Assembly: GCA_021613535.1 (NCBI GenBank)
Contig: CP075495.1
Coordinates: forward strand, 2,542,001-2,606,000
Source of the DNA: Adineta vaga
Lineage: Eukaryota > Animalia > Rotifera
DNA length: 64,000 nucleotides
Reading direction: 5' to 3'
Under the pieces are notes generated by a model. That model was not told the DNA's origin and made no database searches. It saw only the letters and a program-made list of their open reading frames with translations. The translations under genes and the position numbers were made by a program. Shown one piece after another: positions 41,207 to 54,376 of the stretch. Position 1 is the stretch's first letter, and each line of letters begins with the position of its first letter.

Positions 41207-43941
41207 AAGCACATATTATTCTACAATATAAGAAATCAAGAAAAATGACTGAATGATAGAAACAAGCTGTTCATCTAATCCAATACGAGAGAGAGAGAGA
41301 CAGACAGACAGGTGCCGATCGTCAACTAAATAACGAGCGGCAAGATCGAACAAATCAATAGAAAGAGAGACATATATATTAAGACAAGGTCAATACTCGA
41401 ATACAAACCGTGTCAATATTCAACCTATCGGTCACTTTTGATATTTGTCTTTTCTTTCCGAAAAGAAATAAACCGTGTTAGAATGGATTATGTAAGTTTG
41501 TTTCTACATTGTTTTTATTGATATGATGATAGATTTATTCTTTTTATGTCTTAAAACAGTTACACATGGTCAATCAACAAGTGACAAACTTAACATAGTC
41601 AACAATTCTAAGAAGAACTGTTAATGGCACATGACGATTATGAAGAAAAAAAACATTTCTTTCGAAGAGCGAGAACAAGGTGTGACACTCATCAACTTAT
41701 TCAAATATGAATATATATATATATATATATAACTCATATTCATATATGTACGTGTCTTTTACTTTTTCGATACAAAATCCAAACAAATATTCATATATAT
41801 ATTAAAAAAAGAAATCGTTTGATCATGAAGATATGGTTTCATTTCAAGGAAAGACTAATAAATCAATCTAAAGAAATTTCGGATTGATTTGCATATCAAT
41901 TGAAATGAACTTTGATATCTTCGATCGATTCAATGAATTGAAACTGACTTTTTTTTGAAAAAAAAATCAGATCATCTCTATTCATAGTTCAATGCACACA
42001 TCTCAATCGTTTACAAATAAAGAAAACAAAAAAGGCGATTCTTCTCACTTCTCAATCTCATATCATACCGACAATTGTTGACTTGTTCATTCACAGTTTT
42101 GATTTAGATCAGAGAGAAAGAGAAAGACAACAATTGACAGTTTCTATTTTTCGATAAAACAACAAATTTCTTTTTTTTTATGAAGATGAGATTCTCTCAT
42201 CGACACACATATCTCACGAATAAATGAACATTCAAGTATTAAATTTCCTTCTCTCACCAATGACAATGACGTGTTAATCAAAGACAAATAGAACCTGCAC
42301 TTCTAATTCTCTGCTTTCGTGTTAATTTTAACTTAAGCTTATATCGATTTATTTGCATGTCTTAATAAACTAAAGAAAATTGCATCATTAATCCTACTGT
42401 TCATCAAGCTCTGATCGAAGGGTAAACGTTAAGACTTAATCTTTGTCGATTTTCTTTTTAATTGATTCATATAAAAAAATTCGAAGAAAAAACGAACTTA
42501 CCAAAAAAGAATTTATTGAACAACAAAAATTTTCTATGCAAGATATTGATTATTTGATACAAACACGAGTGCTAGAATAACAGTCAGATCACCACTGTGA
42601 ATTGCGATGACGGAGATGTTTGTTCAACTCGATCGATGTATATGTTGATATATATATATATATATATATATGTGTCGATTTCCTTCTCTTTTCTCACTCT
42701 CACTCTCTCTCCTCTCCTTTCTTTCTTTCTCTAATCTATTTTGTACATACATGAGACGTAACATACATACTCGTGTGAAAAGAAACGTATCAATCTATAA
42801 CAAAAGAATCTTCGTTAAGACGGATATATCACAATGTTATTTCATTTCCGGTTTTTATTTATTAGATAAAATAATCCAAATGAATTCATGACGAACTTGT
42901 ATATTGTTCTTTTTATATTCTCGTTCGTTCATATCACTATCAATCGATCTTTTGCTACTGTAATCCTTAATTGACCTGCATGGTCGACAATAATTATCTT
43001 TACTTCCATTCTTTTGTTTATTATTCTTTTCCGATGATGTTCGAAGAATATTAGTGAGTGTTATGTTACTGAAAAGACGAAGAATAGGAAAAGCAAAGAA
43101 AACGCTCAAGCAATGTGTTTGATATAGAGATACTTCGATGAAGTTGGTTGTTCATTAGCATAGAATAGATTGATTCCCTAAAGGTCAATTATGATCTATC
43201 TTTCCTCCTTTTCTTTTCTGCTTATCAATAATGATGATGACAATTAGACAATGCTTTTCCATAGACAAACTTCTTCGTCTCGATTTTCTTTTCTTCAATA
43301 ATAAATGATCTTCTTGTCACGTTCAGGTGAAAAACAGTTCGAATGTAAAGGTCGTAGACGGATATCTTTTGAATGTCAACGATTCTTGGACGCCTCACTT
43401 TTTCTTGATAATAATCGGCTATGAAGCGTGTTCACATATGTAGACTAACGATCGTTCAAGAAATGATGCTTATTCCAATTTCTTTTTGTTTTGTTCTGTT
43501 CATTAGCATACGACGACATACTCATACATATAAAATCTATTTGGTTCATACAGACGAATAGTATGTATGTATATATATATATATTGATAGTAAAAGTCTG
43601 CTGATCTTTAGTTATCATCATGTCTGTTTTAACTCCAACGATAATGACGAAATACTACATAAAACATTTTGTTCATTATTACACAAATATATATATATAT
43701 ACTCGAAAGAAACAAAAACCAGAAAGATATACAATAGAGAAAAAGAAAGTAAATGACTAGAATGAAAAGGAAACATAAAGAATGGCAGATCTGTACGAAG
43801 AAATTCGCTGAACAATATTGACTGACTTGTTTTTCGTTTTGAAATAAAGATATTTACAAAGAACAAAACGAGATTTGATTGAGAAGATTAACATTGATTA
43901 GAAAGTAAATAGAATAAAGACGAAAATTGATTGGAGGATTA

Positions 43942-46900
43942 TTAAGCAAAACTAGATTCATCATCGGACGGTGTTATTGGACGTCGTTCAACAATTGCAC
44001 GAGTCGTTGACATTGAAACAGGTTCGTTAAGCCATGGATGTTCACATGATTGATTATCATGTCTTGTTACTAATGATCGATAAGTATTAAAACTAAACAA
44101 AATCAAAGATTATCAGAATGATTAACAGAAATTTAACCTTGAAAAAAATAACTGATACTTTTCATTAGGTCCACAAGGTCGAATATCGACTTCGATATTT
44201 GCACGTTTTCGTTGTAATGGACTACGTGTACTATTTAATGAACTTGCTGCAGCAGCGGCTGTTGCAACCACGATTGTTTCATCTGTTCCCAATGGTAGAA
44301 TGGCATCTTTATTTCTTTTATTACTTGTTTTTCTTCTTAATTCCGTTTGTTGTTGATGAAATGATGTTTCAATACATTTCAAATCAAAATCTTCATATTC
44401 TTTTAATTCATTGGGTTTCTGAAGATTTTCTTTTAATTCATTATATTTATTATCAAAATCAAACATTTTTGATTTTTCATAGGTATTATCTTTTGCTATC
44501 GATGGTTGTAAATTCATCATAATAGAATTCAATGTTGCAGTATTATCTTCAACTAAAACATTGAATTCGTAAATTCTTTCAATTTGACTTTTTATCAATC
44601 AACTTACTGAACAGATCTAAACTAGGCATTGTTGCTGCTACTGCCGCTGCATTTGTTAATTGAATATCATCTTCAAGAGATTCGATCATTGCTAGAAAGT
44701 AAAATAATTTCGTTCGTAAGAAGAAGAAGAAGAAACTAACCTGTTGCTTCTGTTGATTGTTCAGTTTTTGTTTGTGGTACATTAGTAAAATAATTGATTT
44801 TTTCATTTGGATTTCGAACAGAATTTATTTGATTATTATGAAAATTTGGTCGATAGATATTCTGTTCATTTTCACGAACGGCTTGTAAACGACTCATTTC
44901 AATTGCTCGAAGTAAATCCATTACATCATTGGAAGGTACAACAGATGCTGTAGTATCATCAAGATTTTGTTGTTCAGATGTTGAATCATTTGTTGAAATA
45001 CTTGTTGTCATGGACATATTATTCGTAGCTGTTGGATTTGTTAATGTTGTTAAGCTCTGTTCCAGTTCTTTTTCTTCTAGAAAGCAATGAATAATAAATT
45101 ACAAATGATAGTTATGTTTTCAAAAATGATCTTAAAACCTTTATCGCATTGTTCAGTACGATCTAAACGTAAACATTTCAATGAACAATAATCGAATGAT
45201 ATAGATGTTGTTGGATTACGAGCACGACGTTTAAAACAATTCCGACGTTTACAATATGCACCTAAGAAACAAATTTCTTATACTATCAAGAATTGTTTTT
45301 TTATCTCTACCATCGTCACATGTAATTAGACCAGAATCCATTTCCATTTCTAATTCAGGCCATTCATCAAGTAATGTAACAAGATTCGTATGTCGTCCTT
45401 TTCGATCAACAATCCAAGGATTCTGAAATATAAAAGAATTTCATTCGTAGATTTTTTTTCTCCATCAATAAAATCTTACTTTTGGATCGAGTTCTTTTAA
45501 TGAATAAGCAATCGCTTTTTTCAATTCATTATCATCACCATCAACATCATCTTTAAGTAAATATTTCCATCGTTGTCTGGAGAATTTTTTCAAACTAGGC
45601 GGTGTATCAGGTGGAATAAGACCACGTGCAATTGTTTCTAAGAATTCTAAACGTTTTCGTTTGACATTTTTTGTTACTTGAACAATTCGATGTTTTGGCG
45701 TTCGTAGATAGGGACGAGCAATAATTTGCGAAAGAGTTTCAGTACATTCTTCAAATTCCGTTTGAATAAATTCAAAAATCATTTTCTTATGACCAGAATT
45801 TTCAAGATAATAACCATATACATATGAACAACGAAGAACACGTCGTGCACGTAATAATTCTTTAATTGCATCTTCAATAAATTTCGTTTGAGATTCCATT
45901 GTATTTTCATCAGTTGTTGTTGTTGTTGTTGTTGTCGTAATTGTTTGCATTGGTTGTGCTGATTTGGCAAAGATAATTTCACATTTTTCTTTCGCAGTTT
46001 TCGATAAAGGTTCTTCAAGTTTATAAGAATTTTCATGATTTTTAAAACGTGTATAATAATGAATAAACTAAATAGAGAAATAAAAATAAATTGTGATGAA
46101 AACGAAAATATTACTTTATTTAATTCAACCATTCGTATATGACGTTGTTCAGCAACAGTGATTAATTCTTTTTCTTTCGCTATAATTTTATTTACAGTTT
46201 CATATCGATTGCATTGAAAATAGCCACCGGTTGTACTTGAATGTTTTTTCCATGGTTCCAAACATACCCAACAAAAATCATATTTACATTTAACACATTT
46301 TATATGATTGCAACCTATATGAATCGGCTTGTGAATGTTACTACTGTAAAATGGAGACAATTGATGTACGAACCTTCATTTTTTTGTATAGAAATTGAAC
46401 AATTCGGACATTTTTTCGAATTTGTAACTAACCATAAACAATTCGCAGCGATTTCTTCTTCTTCTTCGGTTCCTTTTACTAAAACGAATATATTAACAAA
46501 ACTTTCTTATTTATATTTAATTCTCTCATTACATTCTTCTGGTTTTATCTCTGCTATTTTATCAAACCAATCTTTCCAATTCTCACATGATGCCGGTTCA
46601 TGACCTTCTTGTAAACAATCCCAACTGAAAGAAAAAGACATCAATTCAAGTACTTGCAATTCTCTCATATTTTACCAAAAATAATGTCCATTTTGACAAT
46701 TAACTGATTTGGAAAATTCTCTCATATGTGATGATTGTAAACGATCAAATACGGGCGATTGAACAGCTAACGTACAATTACTATGTGGACACCATTTAAA
46801 ATTTGGATTCGAATCAACAAACGCTTTGATATCAAATTGTAAATAACGTCGTGCCATATTTTGATCAACACATTTTTCAATAATTTCATTAGGAACAAAT

Positions 46901-49900
46901 TTAAAACAATCAATAGCTGGACAAAAAATACTATGCACAGAACCTTCGACAATTTTCATTGTTAAATATCTACAAGAAGAAAATGTCAAACAATGAAATG
47001 TTTTTTCTTTCTTTGTTTTTCATTCACTCACTGTTCCCAACAATCTTTACAGAATTGATGATCACATGAGATAACAATTCTTTCTACACCACTTTCGAAT
47101 TGTTTTAAACAAATGCCACACTAAAACAAGAACATAAATAAAAACGAAATTTTTATATGAAATTCTTACCTCATTAGAAAGATTAACTGTATCAAAATCA
47201 TTGATATCAATTGTTGTTAAACCACGTTCATGTAAAAGACTTAATGGAGGATTTACACCGGATATTTCACAACAACGAATTGGATCTTCAATCCATGATT
47301 GTAGAAGATATTCTTTTGACCATTCTAAAAAATCAAATTGAATTCATTGTTTTTTCTCATGAAAATGAAAGAATATTTCGATTCAATTTACCATAATTTC
47401 GAAGTAATGCTTCAGCAGTAAATAAAGGAATTTGTAACATATCAGCTGTTTCCACGAGAAGTAAATCTTTTGCTTCTTGTAAATCTTGAATACGTAAACC
47501 ACATGAGATCTGTAAAACAATATATTCAATTAAAATTAAATTCATATTTAGTACAATTACATCATCGGTAAGCAACGGTGATTCATCATTTTCGAAATCT
47601 TCGCAGCTATTCTGAAAAAGAAAAGATAGAAAATAATTTCACATCATCAAATAACAATTTTCATATTCAACTTACACTAAAAATCATTCTCGATTCCAAA
47701 TAAATTGCTAAATCTTTATGACCACTTTTCTCAGCTAAATATTTAAAAAAATCACTGAAAATCGATTAATTCAATCTGAAAATCTTACCAAGTTCACAAG
47801 GTGTTAACTTTTCTCGATTTTCAACGTAGAGTGCAGCACCGGCATTTAATAAACTCTAGAACAAATCAATGAATTACCGTTGAATAATTATTACCTATTA
47901 ACTAAACTTACTTCAACACATGATTTTAATCCATTTTTTGCTGCATAATGCAATGCAGTATTATCATCCTAGACGAAGAAAACATAACATTATGAATTCG
48001 ATAAACAAGTTTCAATCTTTACTGAATCTTTAGCATCAAGATCGGTTGTTTCATTCGTTTGTTTTTCTTTCCATTTTAATAATAATGTTAAACATTCATT
48101 TCGACGAACTTCATTTCCCGTTTGTAATAAACAATGAAGAGCTGATTGATTTAAATGATTACGTTTATTCACATTTCCATTATGATCAGTAAGTAAATGT
48201 CTACAGAAATAAAAACGAAAATTGAAAATTATTTTCAATTCAGTACTCCACCCACAAAACAAGTTTTAAATTTCGGATGATTTAATTACTTTTGTACTTT
48301 CCCATAGATTAAAGGTTACTCATAGATCAATTTTCATCAATATTTTTCTGTCGATTAGACGCTAGTGAAAGAAAACATTTAGTTCGCTAAAAATCAAATA
48401 TTCACTTTTATATGACGATATAAATCATGTTTTGTGCATTTAGTTTCTTATCTGATGAGAAGCTTAGTTGTCAGGTTATTTAATAGATACTTTTTTTCAG
48501 TTGAAAAAACTAATTTTCTTCTTCTTTATCGACGATATGTCGTGTAAAATATTCGTGATTGTTTTGTTATTACTTCAATGGAATTTAGATGTGTTAACAC
48601 AAGGAATATTTTCACCTCCTGAATTTACAACTACAAGCTGTTCTGGTAATAATCAATGGACAACATGGTTTGATTCAGCTGATCCACGTCCTACTCTTGG
48701 TGAATTCGAAATAACAACTCATATTCAACAAATCTTTGCTTCATTTATGTGTCCAGTACCTGTTGCTATTGAAGTAATGAGATTCTATGTTAATATTTCT
48801 TTTGTCTTATCATTGATAATATATATTCTAGGCTCGTACATTAACTGACGGAAATCCAGGACAAACTGGTGATTTATTTCGTTTATCACCTAAAGATGGT
48901 TTCTTATGTTTAAATCAACAAGTTGATGGTTTTAAACAAAAACAATGTGCAGATTACAAAGTACGTTATTGTTGTCCATCGCTTACAATGGGACAAACAA
49001 CGACAACAACAACATTTCGAACACCAATTACTATGAGTAATACTTGTGGTCGTCAAACATTTTCACCGTCAAGTTATCGAATTGTTGGTGGTGTTGAAGC
49101 TATTCCACATTCATGGCCATGGATTGTTTCATTAAGAATTCGTGATCATTTCTGTGGTGGAACTTTAATTGATTCACGACATGTTCTTACAGCTGCACAT
49201 TGTTTAATCGGTGCATATCCAAATTCGCTTCGAGTTGTAGCTGGTTTACACGAAAGATTAAATACTAATACAGGACGTACACAAAATATTGGTGTAGCAC
49301 GTATATTTATACATGAACAATACAATTCAAGAACACAAGCACATGATATTGCCATCATTCGTCTTTGTCAACCAGTACAATTAAATTCCTATGTCAACTT
49401 AATCTGTTTACCAGGACCTGATCCACAAGAATCAACATCAGTAACTGTCGCCGGTTGGGGATCAACATATCAAGGTAGCCCATTACCACCTGCTCTTCGA
49501 CAAGTGACCGTTAAAGTAACAAATGCTCAAGCTCAAGCAGCCTATCCAGCTAATTTCAATGTTCAACGACAAATTGGTGCTGGTATACCTTATGTGGGAG
49601 GAAAGGATAGTTGTCAAGGCGATAGTGGTGGTCCTCTAATGTACAATAGCAATGGACAATGGTATCTATCAGGTGTCGTTAGTTTTGGTTTTGAATGTGC
49701 ACGTGGAAATTTTCCTGGTGTTTACACACGTACAAGTGCTTATCTCAATTGGATACAAAATAAAATCAATACGAAATAATAATTTAAAAAAGAAGATTTA
49801 ACTCATCAAAAGATAAATAAGAGAACATAGAAGAAGAAATCCTGACAGTATTAATCTATTGTGACTTTTTCTTTCTTTTATTTTAATCTCTAGTAAATAT

Positions 49901-51594
49901 CACATTCTTAACTCCATTGACTTTTCATGTTTTTCTTCGAAAATACAAGTTCAAGATTCTATATATATATATATATATTCACACGTTTGCTTTACTAACG
50001 ATTCTTAATCATATTAAATAACAAAACATGTCTTCGAATAATATAACATTCTTTTGTTTTCTTCTTGCCATTGTTTTCTTTCAATCAATCAATGGAATGA
50101 TAATTGGTGAATGTAAAGAACCAAATCAATGGAAATCTTGGTTAAATGTTCATCGTCCGAATTTGATTGGTTTGTCTTTTTTCTTTTGATAATATTTCTA
50201 TCATAATCGATAGATTTTGTTTTATTTTGATTCCTAGGTGAATTTGAATTAGTTCCACATTATCAGAAGATCTTCGCTGGTCAATCATTTGTATGTTTAA
50301 AACCACCAGCATTAGAAGTTTTAACAGCTGATAATCGTGAACCATCAACAACAGGCGATACATTTCGTTTTACATTTACTGAAGGTTTTCTTTGTCTTAA
50401 TCAAATAATCAAACCGAAAAAGAAAGCCTGTACAGATTATAAAATCAAATTTTGTTGTCCAGCTTCATAAAAACTTCATTGAAAAAACTTTTGCTATGTA
50501 TTAAAATAACCTTGCTTCTTATTGAACAGATGATAATAAAGAAACGAATGATTTTGGGAGAGAAATAAGAGAAGAAGAAGACGAAGAAGAAGAAAAAAAC
50601 AATAAAGAAACCAGCTCGAAGATGATGGATAGAATTAGTTGATATTGATGAGATGTTGTTGATAGTAGTATAGACACGCCGTCGTCGTCCGATGATATGA
50701 ATGATAGTTGAAAGAAATGACCGTCTTTAGTTCTGACTATCGACACTAACAACAGCAACAGTAACAACAGTAGCAACCTAATTTATCGATGGTAACAAAT
50801 AAATTTCGACTTTTGGAAAGAAAAAAAAAACGATCCAATCTTTCGTTTATTTAGAATTCATCTTCAAGAAATTATAATAATTCCATACCTTTACATGTCA
50901 ATAGTAAAGGTTCTTTTACATATCATTATGCTGTATGGCCATACTTTTGCTTATTTACTATTATTATTCTAGTTTGGCTTGTTTTATATCTTTCAACAAT
51001 CTATTCACGTAGACATCTTCCAAAAGGCGAACGATATCGATTATCATCGATATGTCAAACACAAGATTTTACAACGATCGGTATCGGTGGTAGTGGTGGT
51101 GGCGGTATTGTGACTGCTACTGAATATGAAGTTTCAACAGTGTTATCACCATTGGATGTATAATAATCTTCGAATTATGAAATAAATAAAAAAACGAACT
51201 TTTAGTTGACACTCGATGACAGGATATTAATGGATCTTAAATACAAACGACTAAATATGTTTACACAGATAAATGTCTTCTTTTCTTCCGTGATTATTTC
51301 TCCACATTTCTGCTCTTTTGTCTAATGATATTATAAGTGAGATTAACACAGCAAAATAAAACGCGAAATATTCTCTGATGGTAATTTATATAGAGAAAAC
51401 TTTTTACTCTACCTGAGAAATGTTTTCATAGCAAAACGACTGGCATAATGTACAAATGTGTCTCCATCTTCGTTTAAAACGTAATTAGGATCAATATGAC
51501 GACGAATATCCGAACGTGAACGATAAATTTGTAGAACTTGCATTTCATCTCCTCGCATCATTGCTCGTTTTAATGTTGATTTATTTGAACCCAT
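43942..51594 (-). CDS. ANKIB1: Ankyrin repeat and IBR domain-containing RBR E3 ligase
   Basis: Exon 1 [23 protein letters not shown] joins [14 protein letters not shown] across intron 48201-51412. RING1, IBR (KWCPHSNC), RING2 KNEGCNHIKC..FCWVC, Ariadne-like helices, UIM-like LLRAIEMS. Confidence 0.9.
48537..49779 (+). CDS. Secreted WxxW-domain trypsin-like serine protease, nested antisense in the ANKIB1 intron
   Basis: Signal peptide, [37 protein letters not shown], Thr linker, R|[23 protein letters not shown]; intron 48774-48831. Confidence 0.92.
50028..50470 (+). CDS. Secreted stand-alone WxxW-domain protein (about 124 aa), nested in the ANKIB1 intron
   Basis: Exons 50028-50169 and 50238-50470. 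Signal peptide, [34 protein letters not shown]. Absent from the ORF track. Confidence 0.85.
50789..51163 (+). CDS. 103-aa single-pass membrane microprotein, nested in the ANKIB1 intron
   Basis: ATG|gt (50789-50791), 63-nt intron, then 309-nt open exon 50855-51163: [46 protein letters not shown]. Confidence 0.65.
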
Positions 51595-51888
51595 GCTTTG
51601 AATTTTTTCAATATTTTTGTAGCGTAAAAATAGAATATATACTTGTTAGTTGAGAAAAATAAATAATTATAATTTATTCCAAGGATCTTAGACTAGGAGA
51701 AAATAGGGCAAGAAAAGAAAAATAAGATAATAAACAGAACAGAAAATATATATTTTTTCAGATTGGTTTATTATTTGTTAGAATTCCATTGAAGAGGTCG
51801 CTCGAAGATAATCAATGAGTCATACATGAAATGAATTCATCTCTATTCTTATCATTTATATTGTTTATTGTTTCATTTTTCAGAACAA

Positions 51889-52731
51889 ATGTCTACACCA
51901 TCACCACTTTTACTTCTTGATGATGAACGAAAAGCTCAATTAGATTTATTGAATAAAATTGATCAATCAGGTAAGAATATGATGAAGATATTTTGAAAGT
52001 AATTCTTTCGATTTTATTTAGCCGCTGTTGATATTTGTAATGCAGCATTAGGTTATCTTTCAACAGGTCTAAATACGAAATCTATCACTAGTGCAGCAAG
52101 TATGTACTAATATCATACAGAAAAAACTCATTGTTCTTTTTTGTCAAAATCTTTATTTAGATCATCTTCAATTAGATGTTGAAACTGTTCGAACAACAAT
52201 TGATAGTCTTCTATGGTTATATACTGAATGTGCGAAAACAAAAGTAAGATCTATGAATATGAGAAAACGATTTTAATTATAAAATTTAGATTTCATTTGA
52301 AAGTCTAGAAGAATCATTGAAATTACTTGGTTATAGTAGTCCAATTCGAGAAAGTTTTATTGAATGTTATAAATCCAAAGCGAATGAATTACAAAAAACA
52401 TTAACACGTGATCTTGCACTTTCATTACCTTCTTATAAAAATTTAAATTGGCGATTTGATGTACAAGTAAGTTATCTTAATTCAATTTGTTTTTTTTTCT
52501 ATTTATTTCGAAAGAATTTAGATTGCAACAAGAACAATGCGTAGTCGAAAACAATTTGAACCATTTTTTATCTTAAAATTAACCTTAATCAATGCAAATA
52601 ATGATAAAGAACAAGTTCATCTCTTTCAAATTGATCCATTAACATTAGTACATATTGTTGAACAACTTGAAGCAGCTATGAATGAATCCCGAAGTAGTCA
52701 CGCGAGAAGAATTATGCAAACATTCCGATAA
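51889..52731 (+). CDS. COMMD2: COMM domain-containing protein 2
   Basis: LLLLDDERKAQLDLL N-terminus; LSLPSYKNLNWRFDVQIATRTMR..LEAAMNESRSSHARRI COMM domain. Head-to-head with ANKIB1. Confidence 0.85.
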
Positions 52732-53209
52732 TTATGTCTGGTTTTTTTTCTTCTTCCTACTGTGATACTCAAACTAATGCAATAAACTAGTTTTTTTCTT
52801 CTTTTTTTTATTCACTGTAATTTCTTCTTTCTATTTTCTAGTTCATTGATAGATAATAAAATACATTTGATCATATGTAAAATTTTACTTTGAAACATCA
52901 GCTAGAAATCACGAGTTCTGTTCAATAATAATATCAATAAATTATTGATTAAGAGATAAAATGTAAAATCGATCTAAGAAATTTCTTGTTTATTCATCAT
53001 GCAATATTGTTTTTTGTTTCGAGAATAGAATATTCAATTTATCTAAATCATAATCTTATATTAAATATCAAAATTCGTTTCAAATAACTCCTGATATCGT
53101 ATGGAAAAAATAATCTTCTTAGATTTCACTCTCGCATGTATACACGAAATCTTGTTAATCTACATAATCATTGAATTTTCTTACAAATGAGTTCATTCGA
53201 ACGATCAAA

Positions 53210-54376
53210 ATGAATACAACAGAAGCAACATCGTCACCTTCAACAGATTTTAGCATTCGTCCACATTTTATATTATTCGACATGTTCTTAATTAGTTCTA
53301 TCTTCTTAGGTTTTATTTTTTGTGTCTCATTCATCTGTATATCAGTGGGTTATCGATCCTGTCGATCTATTTTAACTTTACTTTCGGCTAATTCTTGTAT
53401 TGCTGGCTTGATTTTTAATGGTGTTCAACTCAGTAATGCTTTATTATTATTTCGAGATGATATTCATCTTTCAACATCAAATTATAATCAATATTGTGAA
53501 GTTCGTAATTATCTTATGCATGTATCTGGTAGTCTTCTCTATTATTCCTATTGTGTTCAATCCATTTCTCGTTTATTTTTTGTTGTCTTCTATAGACATA
53601 CATTTCTTTTAACTTATCATATACATTTTATTCTTATTGCAATTCAATGGACACTTGGTTTAATGTTACCAATTTCAATTTTAACATCTGGTCATCGACA
53701 ATATCAAACTGAAACAAGTCAATGTTTTATTACGATTAAAGATGTTTCACAAACATTATATGGTAAGAACATGAATAATATTTTCGTTGAAAGATGAATT
53801 GAATCGATTCGTTTTTTGTTTTAGGAATGATTTCAATGTTTCTTTTACCAATGACAATTATTTCAATATGCTATACACATATTGTTTGTTTCGTACGTGC
53901 GGCCGTTCAACGAGCAAGAAAAGCAAATGCAATGCCAATACGAAAATTTAATATTATACGAGATCAAGGTAGATGAATTGTATCTTTTTCGAAAATGAAC
54001 ATCTTAGAATTCATCTTATTTCTAAGGTGCAATACATATAAAACATCGATTTTCTAATACGAAAGATATCAAAGTATTTCGACATATAATCATTCTTATT
54101 ACTGTTCTTTGCATCGGTAAGATATACATGAAATAATCAATTCAAATGATTCATCTATTGAAATATTTAGGTGGTTTTCCTTATTCAATGTTAATGGTTT
54201 TAAACACTCAAAGTATTGCTCCATTCTCTGTCTATCGTCTTTGTATTACAATCTTCTCATTGAGTGTAACAGTTGATATGGGTGCAATATTTTTTTTTAA
54301 CAAAAATGTTCGTACAATATTTTTCAACTGTTTTCAAGGACAATCTAATCGAATCGGAATACTTGTTCGCGGTTAA
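53210..54376 (+). CDS. Divergent class A-like 7TM receptor
   Basis: Exons 53210-53762, 53825-53968, 54027-54116, 54171-54376. Seven hydrophobic segments, Cys at top of TM3 (YCEVR), QSISRL in place of DRY, ECL2 Cys. Confidence 0.75.

Follow-up and report, generated by a model that had tools for sequence, protein, structure and literature searches.

Three opposite-strand genes in the long first intron of ANKIB1 in the rotifer Adineta vaga: a probably ancient nest

Introduction

Conserved nests of several genes within a single intron, as well as nested genes that survive the loss of their host, are already known. The insect TipE/Teh cluster sits in the last intron of CG18675 (PMC3240667), lrrtm3 has been kept without ctnna3 in Xenopus (PMC3933685), and miR-499 has been kept without MYH14 in teleosts (PMC3716903). 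Here we have analyzed a window of 64,000 nucleotides (nt) from the bdelloid rotifer Adineta vaga (chromosome 2, C2:2542001-2606000, in an assembly of 100.8 Mb in six contigs), which belongs to a region of ~30% G+C, and we describe a locus in which the first intron of the E3-ligase gene ANKIB1 (ankyrin repeat and IBR domain-containing protein 1) contains three genes on the opposite strand, denoted A, B and C, which encode a protease with WxxW and trypsin domains, a protein made of a WxxW domain only and a small membrane protein, respectively. All positions are those of the window, unless a chromosome or locus is named.

The locus resembles the TipE/Teh cluster in that several small and partly paralogous genes for membrane or secreted proteins lie in one intron of an unrelated and conserved host, where they have long been kept. 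In the TipE cluster, however, all genes are paralogous, their common target is known and their co-expression has been measured. In the present nest, a shared domain links A with B only, C being unrelated; also, the host intron is in this case the first one, in a genome whose introns are otherwise ~50-65 nt. As for the lrrtm3/ctnna3 and miR-499/MYH14 pairs, one duplicate has the host together with the nested genes while the other has only nested genes in the syntenic place. Unlike in those pairs, two protein-coding nested genes (A' and C') survive together here, the loss is common to Adineta and Rotaria, and the lineage is paleotetraploid and asexual. The locus is one more case of phenomena already described and overturns nothing; its value for the study of genome evolution is that of a clean and datable multi-gene intron nest in a tiny-intron genome, in which nested genes probably outlasted their host after duplication. 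It also offers leads for rotifer extracellular biology, namely a rotifer-restricted architecture that combines a reduced CysD domain with a trypsin domain, and the bdelloid-only small membrane protein C.

Materials and Methods

Contigs from three RNA-type runs (X1, X5 and X6) and from one DNA run (X16) were mapped on positions 46300-52200. These contigs are unstranded and carry one depth figure each, which is a poor measure of expression. Exons were searched individually, and the full-length proteins of A, B and C were represented by the database entries P0001, P0125 and P0121, respectively, which are 100% identical to the exons; each of the three genes has already been called in public data, P0121 being such a public gene call. 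A survey of the literature retrieved no paper that deals with this locus, with proteins of the WxxW-trypsin type or with nested genes of bdelloids.

Results and Discussion

ANKIB1 and its 3.2-kb first intron

The initial annotation of this DNA had placed a 3212-nt first intron of ANKIB1 at positions 48201-51412, and our reading of the sequence arrives at the same coordinates. The gene runs on the minus strand. Exon 1, recognized from its open reading frame (ORF), from alignment of orthologues and from an X1 contig of depth 6.01, has its coding sequence (CDS) at 51594..51413 and a 5' untranslated region that extends to ~51677; it opens with an ATG at 51594 and comprises 60 codons plus 2 nt, the product beginning with MGSNKST. 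The intron (48201..51412, GT..AG) has its donor GT at 51412-51411 and its acceptor AG at 48202-48201, so that exon 2 (48022..48200), delimited by alignment to residues 65-113 of entry P0163 and by X1 depth, starts from 48200. The first ankyrin repeat of the protein is split by the intron, as it starts in exon 1 and is completed by exon 2 in a fitting reading phase. Further exons at 45152..47966 encode ankyrin repeats, the RING1-IBR-RING2 module and the Ariadne domain, as inferred from X1 joints, from a Pfam match to IBR on 46678-46968 and from translated searches (tblastn) in which the window is collinear with Ank+IBR+Ariadne proteins down to 45152. Nine other introns of the gene, observed as CT..AC joints in X1, measure 49-67 nt, which makes the first intron ~50 times longer. 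No RNA family was matched in an Rfam search of 47800-51800, and thus a small nucleolar RNA or other known RNA does not explain the length of this intron.

The join of 51413 to 48200 in the ANKIB1 mRNA, on which the nesting depends, is supported by depth arithmetic and by collinearity with orthologues, the joint itself not being among the RNA joints listed. In X1, the depth in the bin 48073-48269 is 3.91, which equals 6.01 x 128/197 and indicates that coverage stops exactly at 48200. The depth is zero in 48270-48466, whereas on the far side of the intron it amounts to 0.27 in the bin 51225-51421, or 6.01 x 9/197, and to 6.01 over 51422-51618: coverage therefore starts again exactly at 51413, and the same bin arithmetic makes the contig of depth 6.01 cover 51413..51677 exactly. 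Since the bins fit a depth of 6.01 on both sides, a single contig spans both exon edges with nothing in between. At the other end of exon 2, an X1 loose end at 48022 bears the letters of the previous ANKIB1 exon. A library-wide search with exon 1 retrieved long proteins that match through residues 1-61/62, among which those of Nematostella, Babylonia and Ptychodera are named ANKIB1 by their source, with Ank, IBR, Ariadne and UIM domains. In agreement, tblastn with ANKIB1 orthologues aligns 51594-51412 with their residues 1-63 and 48202-47909 with their residues 63-152, leaving no gap of residues at the junction.

ANKIB1 is single-copy in the A. vaga genome; other matches in this genome were considered as a homoeologous ANKIB1 and were rejected, as they correspond to Ariadne-type paralogues. 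The orthologous models of Rotaria and Adineta steineri contain Ank_2, IBR, IBR_1 and Ariadne domains. In Rotaria sp. Silwood1 and A. steineri, the public models show ANKIB1 exon 1 as a separate gene of 84 or 66 amino acids (aa) (L020:13351-14773, L022:12552-12861 and L024:12561-12870), and ANKIB1 is given an alternative start beside exon 2; the join described above corrects these models, which split off the first exon. An ANKIB1 sequence from a JGI metagenome, whose N-terminus is encoded without any intron, was not used as an outgroup.

Three transcription units inside the intron

The intron holds three co-oriented genes on the plus strand, each of them spliced and intact, as had been proposed from the sequence; GT..AG joints in RNA contigs bear out their splicing and show them to be transcribed. 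Gene A (I4U23_006578, 394 aa) has its CDS at 48537-48773 + 48832-49779, interrupted by an intron of 58 nt (48774-48831) whose joint 48773/48832 is seen in X1 and X6. The CDS of gene B (I4U23_006579, 124 aa) lies at 50028-50169 + 50238-50470, with an intron of 68 nt (50170-50237) and a joint seen in X1 and X5. The transcript of gene C has a first exon that begins at or before 50649 and ends at 50791, an intron of 63 nt (50792-50854) and a second exon from 50855 to at least 51301; the CDS (103 aa) occupies 50789-50791 + 50855-51163, the ATG being the last codon of the first exon, and the joint is seen in X1 and X5. None of the three joints occurs in the DNA run X16. The assignment of domains made in the initial annotation (WxxW-trypsin, WxxW-only and membrane protein) agrees with the Pfam matches and sequence features given below. 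It had also remarked that two of the genes are absent from the ORF track: neither the second exon of B nor C has an internal start codon in frame, and for this reason they were missed by a mechanical list of ORFs.

The interval 48201-51412 encloses the RNA contigs of all three genes, which extend over 48624-49913 (A), 50001-50570 (B) and 50649-51301 (C). The three genes are found on separate contigs, with depths, in the order A, B and C, of 104, 22 and 7 in X1 and of 29, 77 and 10 in X5, and with A only in X6. The first 87 nt of the A CDS are uncovered in these runs, which is probably due to contig breaks at two variable sites. The transcript contigs of A end near 49913-49920, with an AGTAAA at 49892, and the transcript of B extends from ~50001 to ~50570 with an AATAAA at 50535. 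On the plus strand, a (TA)9.5 tract (49960..49978) precedes the B contig, which begins at 50001 in X5, by ~25-40 nt and is likely to be the TATA element of gene B, as judged from its composition and position. A JGI contig of 1378 nt represents a monocistronic mRNA with an uninterrupted A orthologue; its 5' end corresponds to the genomic DNA that precedes A and not to a spliced leader. When the 3.2-kb intron is spliced out, A, B and C would be removed from the ANKIB1 pre-mRNA.

Conservation and history of the nest

The comparison with relatives, which had been suggested as a check of the nest, was carried out and shows the same order in Rotaria sp. Silwood1 and A. steineri: ANKIB1 body (minus), A, B and C (plus), ANKIB1 exon 1 (minus), COMMD and 7tm_1. 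In these two relatives, ANKIB1 exon 1 has 87-88% identity to that of A. vaga, with a ratio of nonsynonymous to synonymous substitution (dN/dS) of ~0.1, and dN/dS is below 1 for all parts of the nest.

A distinct arrangement is found on the homoeologous region of A. vaga, which is located on chromosome 5 (C5) and is collinear, with the order wnt', A'2, A'1, C' and abhydrolase'. From this C5 region ANKIB1, B, COMMD and the 7tm gene are all missing. The reduced order wnt, A', C', abhydrolase, which includes neither ANKIB1 nor B, is present on the second homoeologue of A. steineri and Rotaria as well, and the losses, being common to Adineta and Rotaria, predate the split of these genera. In fact, the persistence of A and C after the loss of ANKIB1 from the other homoeologue indicates that both genes are independent of the host. 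According to the history that we propose as the simplest, the A, B, C trio would already have been inside or beside ANKIB1 before the bdelloid homoeologues diverged, and one homoeologue would then have lost ANKIB1, B, COMMD and the G protein-coupled receptor (GPCR) gene while keeping A and C. The nest thus probably predates the bdelloid genome duplication, and its nested genes have probably outlived their host. Contigs of Didymodactylos, the earliest-branching bdelloid, were tried for a test of linkage and set aside, as they are too short and possibly paralogous.

A permissive search for relics of ANKIB1 exons on the second homoeologue yielded one match resembling exon 1, NDVLNDASNKIVHFGSQFAKKTNLK, at L027:12641-12715 on the minus strand of the Rotaria homoeologue that lacks ANKIB1 (48% identity over 25 aa, expectation value E 4e-4). 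This weak match, found in Rotaria only, follows C' immediately and has the strand expected of the host; it could be what remains of the lost gene.

Ordinary nest or functional module

We favour, with good though not complete confidence, the reading that the locus is an ancient nested-gene arrangement, in which ANKIB1 intron 1 houses three separate opposite-strand units, and that it is otherwise ordinary. Common synteny, together with the fact that genes are hard to delete from within an intron, would account for the conserved order, rather than a functional coupling. Some points weigh against this reading: unstranded contigs cannot give the ends of transcripts, and read-through from B to C may occur, as 50571-50648 is a simple repeat that the contigs leave uncovered; the host join is derived from depths and collinearity rather than from an RNA joint; the activation and tethering of A and the topology of C, discussed below, are predictions from sequence motifs; and selection, instead of inertia, could be the reason why A and C have stayed adjacent on the two homoeologues of three species. 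It is extremely unlikely that the exon at 51413-51594 is instead a separate small gene, with A, B and C as mere intergenic neighbours of ANKIB1, although in Rotaria sp. Silwood1 and A. steineri the public models do stop ANKIB1 before A and call this exon a gene of its own. Indeed, the exon is homologous to residues 1-62 of named ANKIB1 proteins, whose following residues resume in exon 2, an ankyrin repeat is split over the junction in the proper phase, the depth of a single RNA contig accounts exactly for both exon edges, and A. vaga has no in-frame ATG upstream of exon 2. An operon-like unit, in which A, B and C would be produced from one plus-strand precursor resolved by 3' processing and spliced-leader (SL) trans-splicing, is also very improbable: the genes are co-oriented and their spacers are short (some 80 nt separate the contig of A from that of B, and the uncovered stretch from B to C has at most ~80 nt), and SL trans-splicing does exist in rotifers, bdelloids included, for which operons are unreported (PMC7986045), but the three genes are on separate RNA contigs with several-fold differences in depth, the mRNA contig of the A orthologue is monocistronic with a genomic 5' end instead of a leader, the TA tract is spaced from the B contig as a TATA element would be, and poly(A) signals follow both A and B.

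The initial annotation had further suggested that the three genes might be a co-expressed extracellular module, and this suggestion finds no support in expression or linkage. Besides being on separate contigs, the genes have unequal depths whose A:B order flips between X1 and X5, while X6 has A only (depth being a weak measure of expression), and B has been lost from the second homoeologue in three species while A and C persist. Moreover, unrelated neighbours (wnt, abhydrolase and cyclin) keep their order equally well, which means that the linkage of A, B and C is not above background synteny. Interference of their transcription with the host E3 ligase, which the initial annotation had raised as well, would be a hypothetical effect at this stage. 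It is nevertheless conceivable, if unlikely, that selection holds A, B and C together as co-workers that share regulatory elements inside the intron; protease A would then be docked through its CysD-like domain to a matrix of glycan- or mucus-like nature, B would compete for this docking or regulate it, and C would be a membrane anchor or a substrate. Consistent with such a module are the order and orientation of A, B and C, kept in three species, with A and C together on both homoeologues even without the host, the homologous domain common to A and B, the non-covalent dimers formed by mucin CysD domains (PMC3195396), the transcription of all three genes in X1 and X5, and the existence elsewhere of co-ordinately expressed nested clusters such as that of TipE (PMC3240667). 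However, B is dispensable on homoeologue 2, the flanking genes and contig depths speak against a module as stated above, and C evolves fast, with 41-64% identity and dN/dS up to 0.79. Prediction of a complex between mature A and mature B gave a score of 0.00, which is evidence in neither direction. We consider it improbable that the three genes form an extracellular unit under selection and common regulation, linked since before the bdelloid duplication, with the intron as an insulated regulatory domain, and the corresponding roles beside a CysD-tethered protease A (for B, that of an unattached CysD domain that competes or regulates, and for C, that of a dedicated single-pass membrane partner) appear to us quite doubtful; if true, the selected unit would represent a rare animal case of a functionally coupled cluster kept inside, and outliving, its host gene.

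Predicted products of genes A, B and C

The product of gene A has a hydrophobic N-terminus that resembles a signal peptide, a Mucin2_WxxW domain at residues 41-127 (Pfam, 61.8 bits, 1e-16, cut-off 22.4) in which the WxxW motif is WTTW, a Thr-rich linker after this domain and a Trypsin domain at residues 163-387 (215.7 bits, 9e-64, cut-off 20.6). An activation site YR|IVGG is present at R162|I163, the catalytic residues are His202 (AAHC), Asp251 (DIAI) and Ser344 (GDSGG), and Asp338 (KDSCQ), six residues before the catalytic Ser, takes the position of the trypsin S1 pocket. These features suggest a secreted zymogen of a trypsin-like S1 protease, from which the signal peptide would be removed and which would be activated by cleavage after Arg162, freeing the Ile163-Val-Gly-Gly N-terminus; Asp338, which is residue 189 in chymotrypsin numbering, predicts that the enzyme cuts after Arg or Lys. 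The closest relatives of known structure are plasminogen/plasmin, enteropeptidase, plasma kallikrein and chymotrypsinogen C (E ~1e-46 to 1e-45). In the alignment, residue 1 of chymotrypsinogen C has Cys151 of A as its counterpart, and Cys271, which corresponds to position 122, is found in an ICLP motif. In such proteases, the Cys1-Cys122 bond holds the N-terminal piece on after activation. The WxxW domain of A would likewise stay tethered to the active enzyme, because Cys151 aligns with chymotrypsinogen Cys1: a Cys151-Cys271 disulfide would retain the WxxW/CysD-like domain and could place the protease on an extracellular partner. Protein A is thus comparable to mosaic proteases (enteropeptidase, plasma kallikrein, plasminogen and chymotrypsinogen C) in having R|IVGG, the triad, Asp189 and a cysteine at the Cys1 position, and differs from them in its N-terminal module, which is a WxxW/CysD-like domain.

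In the Atlas, among clusters of at least 50 members, one cluster combining WxxW and trypsin was found, and rotifer is the origin of 166 of its 166 members with known phylum. The WxxW-trypsin homoeologue is present twice on chromosome 5 (C5:14700669-14702120 and 14715055-14716503), the two copies (L018 and L019) being 94% identical over 1.46 kb and 14.4 kb apart. This duplication is limited to the gene itself, and no ORF of at least 120 aa lies between the copies.

Gene B encodes a signal peptide followed by a single WxxW/CysD-like domain (Mucin2_WxxW, PF13330, 50.4 bits, 4e-13, cut-off 22.4) with six cysteines and a WKSW motif. Compared by sequence with the Protein Data Bank (PDB), B yields only a weak match, to the CysD domain of MUC5AC (E 0.5). 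An AlphaFold model of B, obtained from 11 rotifer domains and having a mean local confidence (pLDDT) of 69, returned in Foldseek mucin CysD domains (MUC5AC, MUC2 and MUC5B) for all of its top eight PDB matches, with TM scores of 0.40-0.65, E values of 4e-3 or weaker and a probability of 0.99-1.00 in seven of the eight (0.51 in the remaining one). Like the CysD domains of MUC2, MUC5AC and MUC5B, the rotifer domains have the WxxW motif and a C-terminal pattern G-F-L-C-x-N-Q ... C-x-D-Y-K ... C-C; they differ from them in that they are not located within long mucin regions rich in proline, threonine and serine, but stand alone (B) or fused to a protease (A). The CysD domain of MUC2 has ten cysteines engaged in five intradomain disulfides (PMC3195396). 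This ten-cysteine pattern is not found among the 11 rotifer domains, in which six cysteines and the two WxxW tryptophans are invariant, and the rotifer domains are on this count a reduced variant of CysD.

In a tree of these domains, B stands apart from all A-type WxxW domains with 100/100 support, and from this position it follows that B arose before A and A' diverged. Gene B would accordingly be an old partial paralogue of A that retains the WxxW domain alone. The A. vaga genome has at least 12 WxxW loci. It also has a gene for a DPY19-type tryptophan C-mannosyltransferase (C2:1876664-1878806), and given its presence the WxxW motifs could be C-mannosylated. RNA contigs of another locus match the window at 48864-48923 only, which corresponds to 60 nt of the WxxW domain of A, with 5-6 mismatches and with unlike flanks; these contigs have a depth of ~820 in X5 and of 4.8 in X6, and loose ends of X1 are found at the same two places. 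It appears that a WxxW paralogue elsewhere in the genome is very highly expressed, at least in X5.

The product of gene C has an N-terminal tail of ~28 residues with two N-x-S/T sequons, one transmembrane helix at approximately residues 29-51 (mean hydropathy 2.6) followed by a basic RRH, and a C-terminus that ends in ...SPLDV. These motifs are those expected of a lineage-restricted single-pass membrane protein, whose N-terminus would be outside. No Pfam family matched it, and a search of the Atlas retrieved generic clusters of small single-pass membrane proteins only, from which no family could be assigned; the relatives found are from bdelloids only. Across six loci, comprising orthologues and homoeologues, the open frame is intact, with dN/dS of 0.38-0.79 and 41-64% identity, and by this comparison of sequences gene C qualifies as coding but fast-evolving. 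The 5' leader (50649-50788) contains five upstream ATGs before the start codon, which suggests weak or regulated translation.

Neighbouring genes and sequences

Directly upstream of ANKIB1, the plus strand carries a spliced gene at 51882-52161, with joints 51968/52020 and 52099/52161. Orthologous loci have a COMM-domain gene in this place, and the chromosome 5 homoeologue lacks the spliced gene. A 7tm_1 GPCR-like ORF follows at ~53171-53800, and it is equally absent from that homoeologue.

The other short matches of the relic search were considered as ANKIB1 exons and rejected, as they occur in several frames and resemble conserved non-coding DNA upstream of wnt. Matches in several frames are located at ~42590-43430 of the window, between wnt and the 3' end of ANKIB1, and at L027:6930-7830 and L029:8800-9410. 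Those at ~42590-43430 tie this stretch to the DNA between wnt' and A' on the second homoeologue, both in Rotaria and in A. steineri, and have the look of conserved non-coding sequence.

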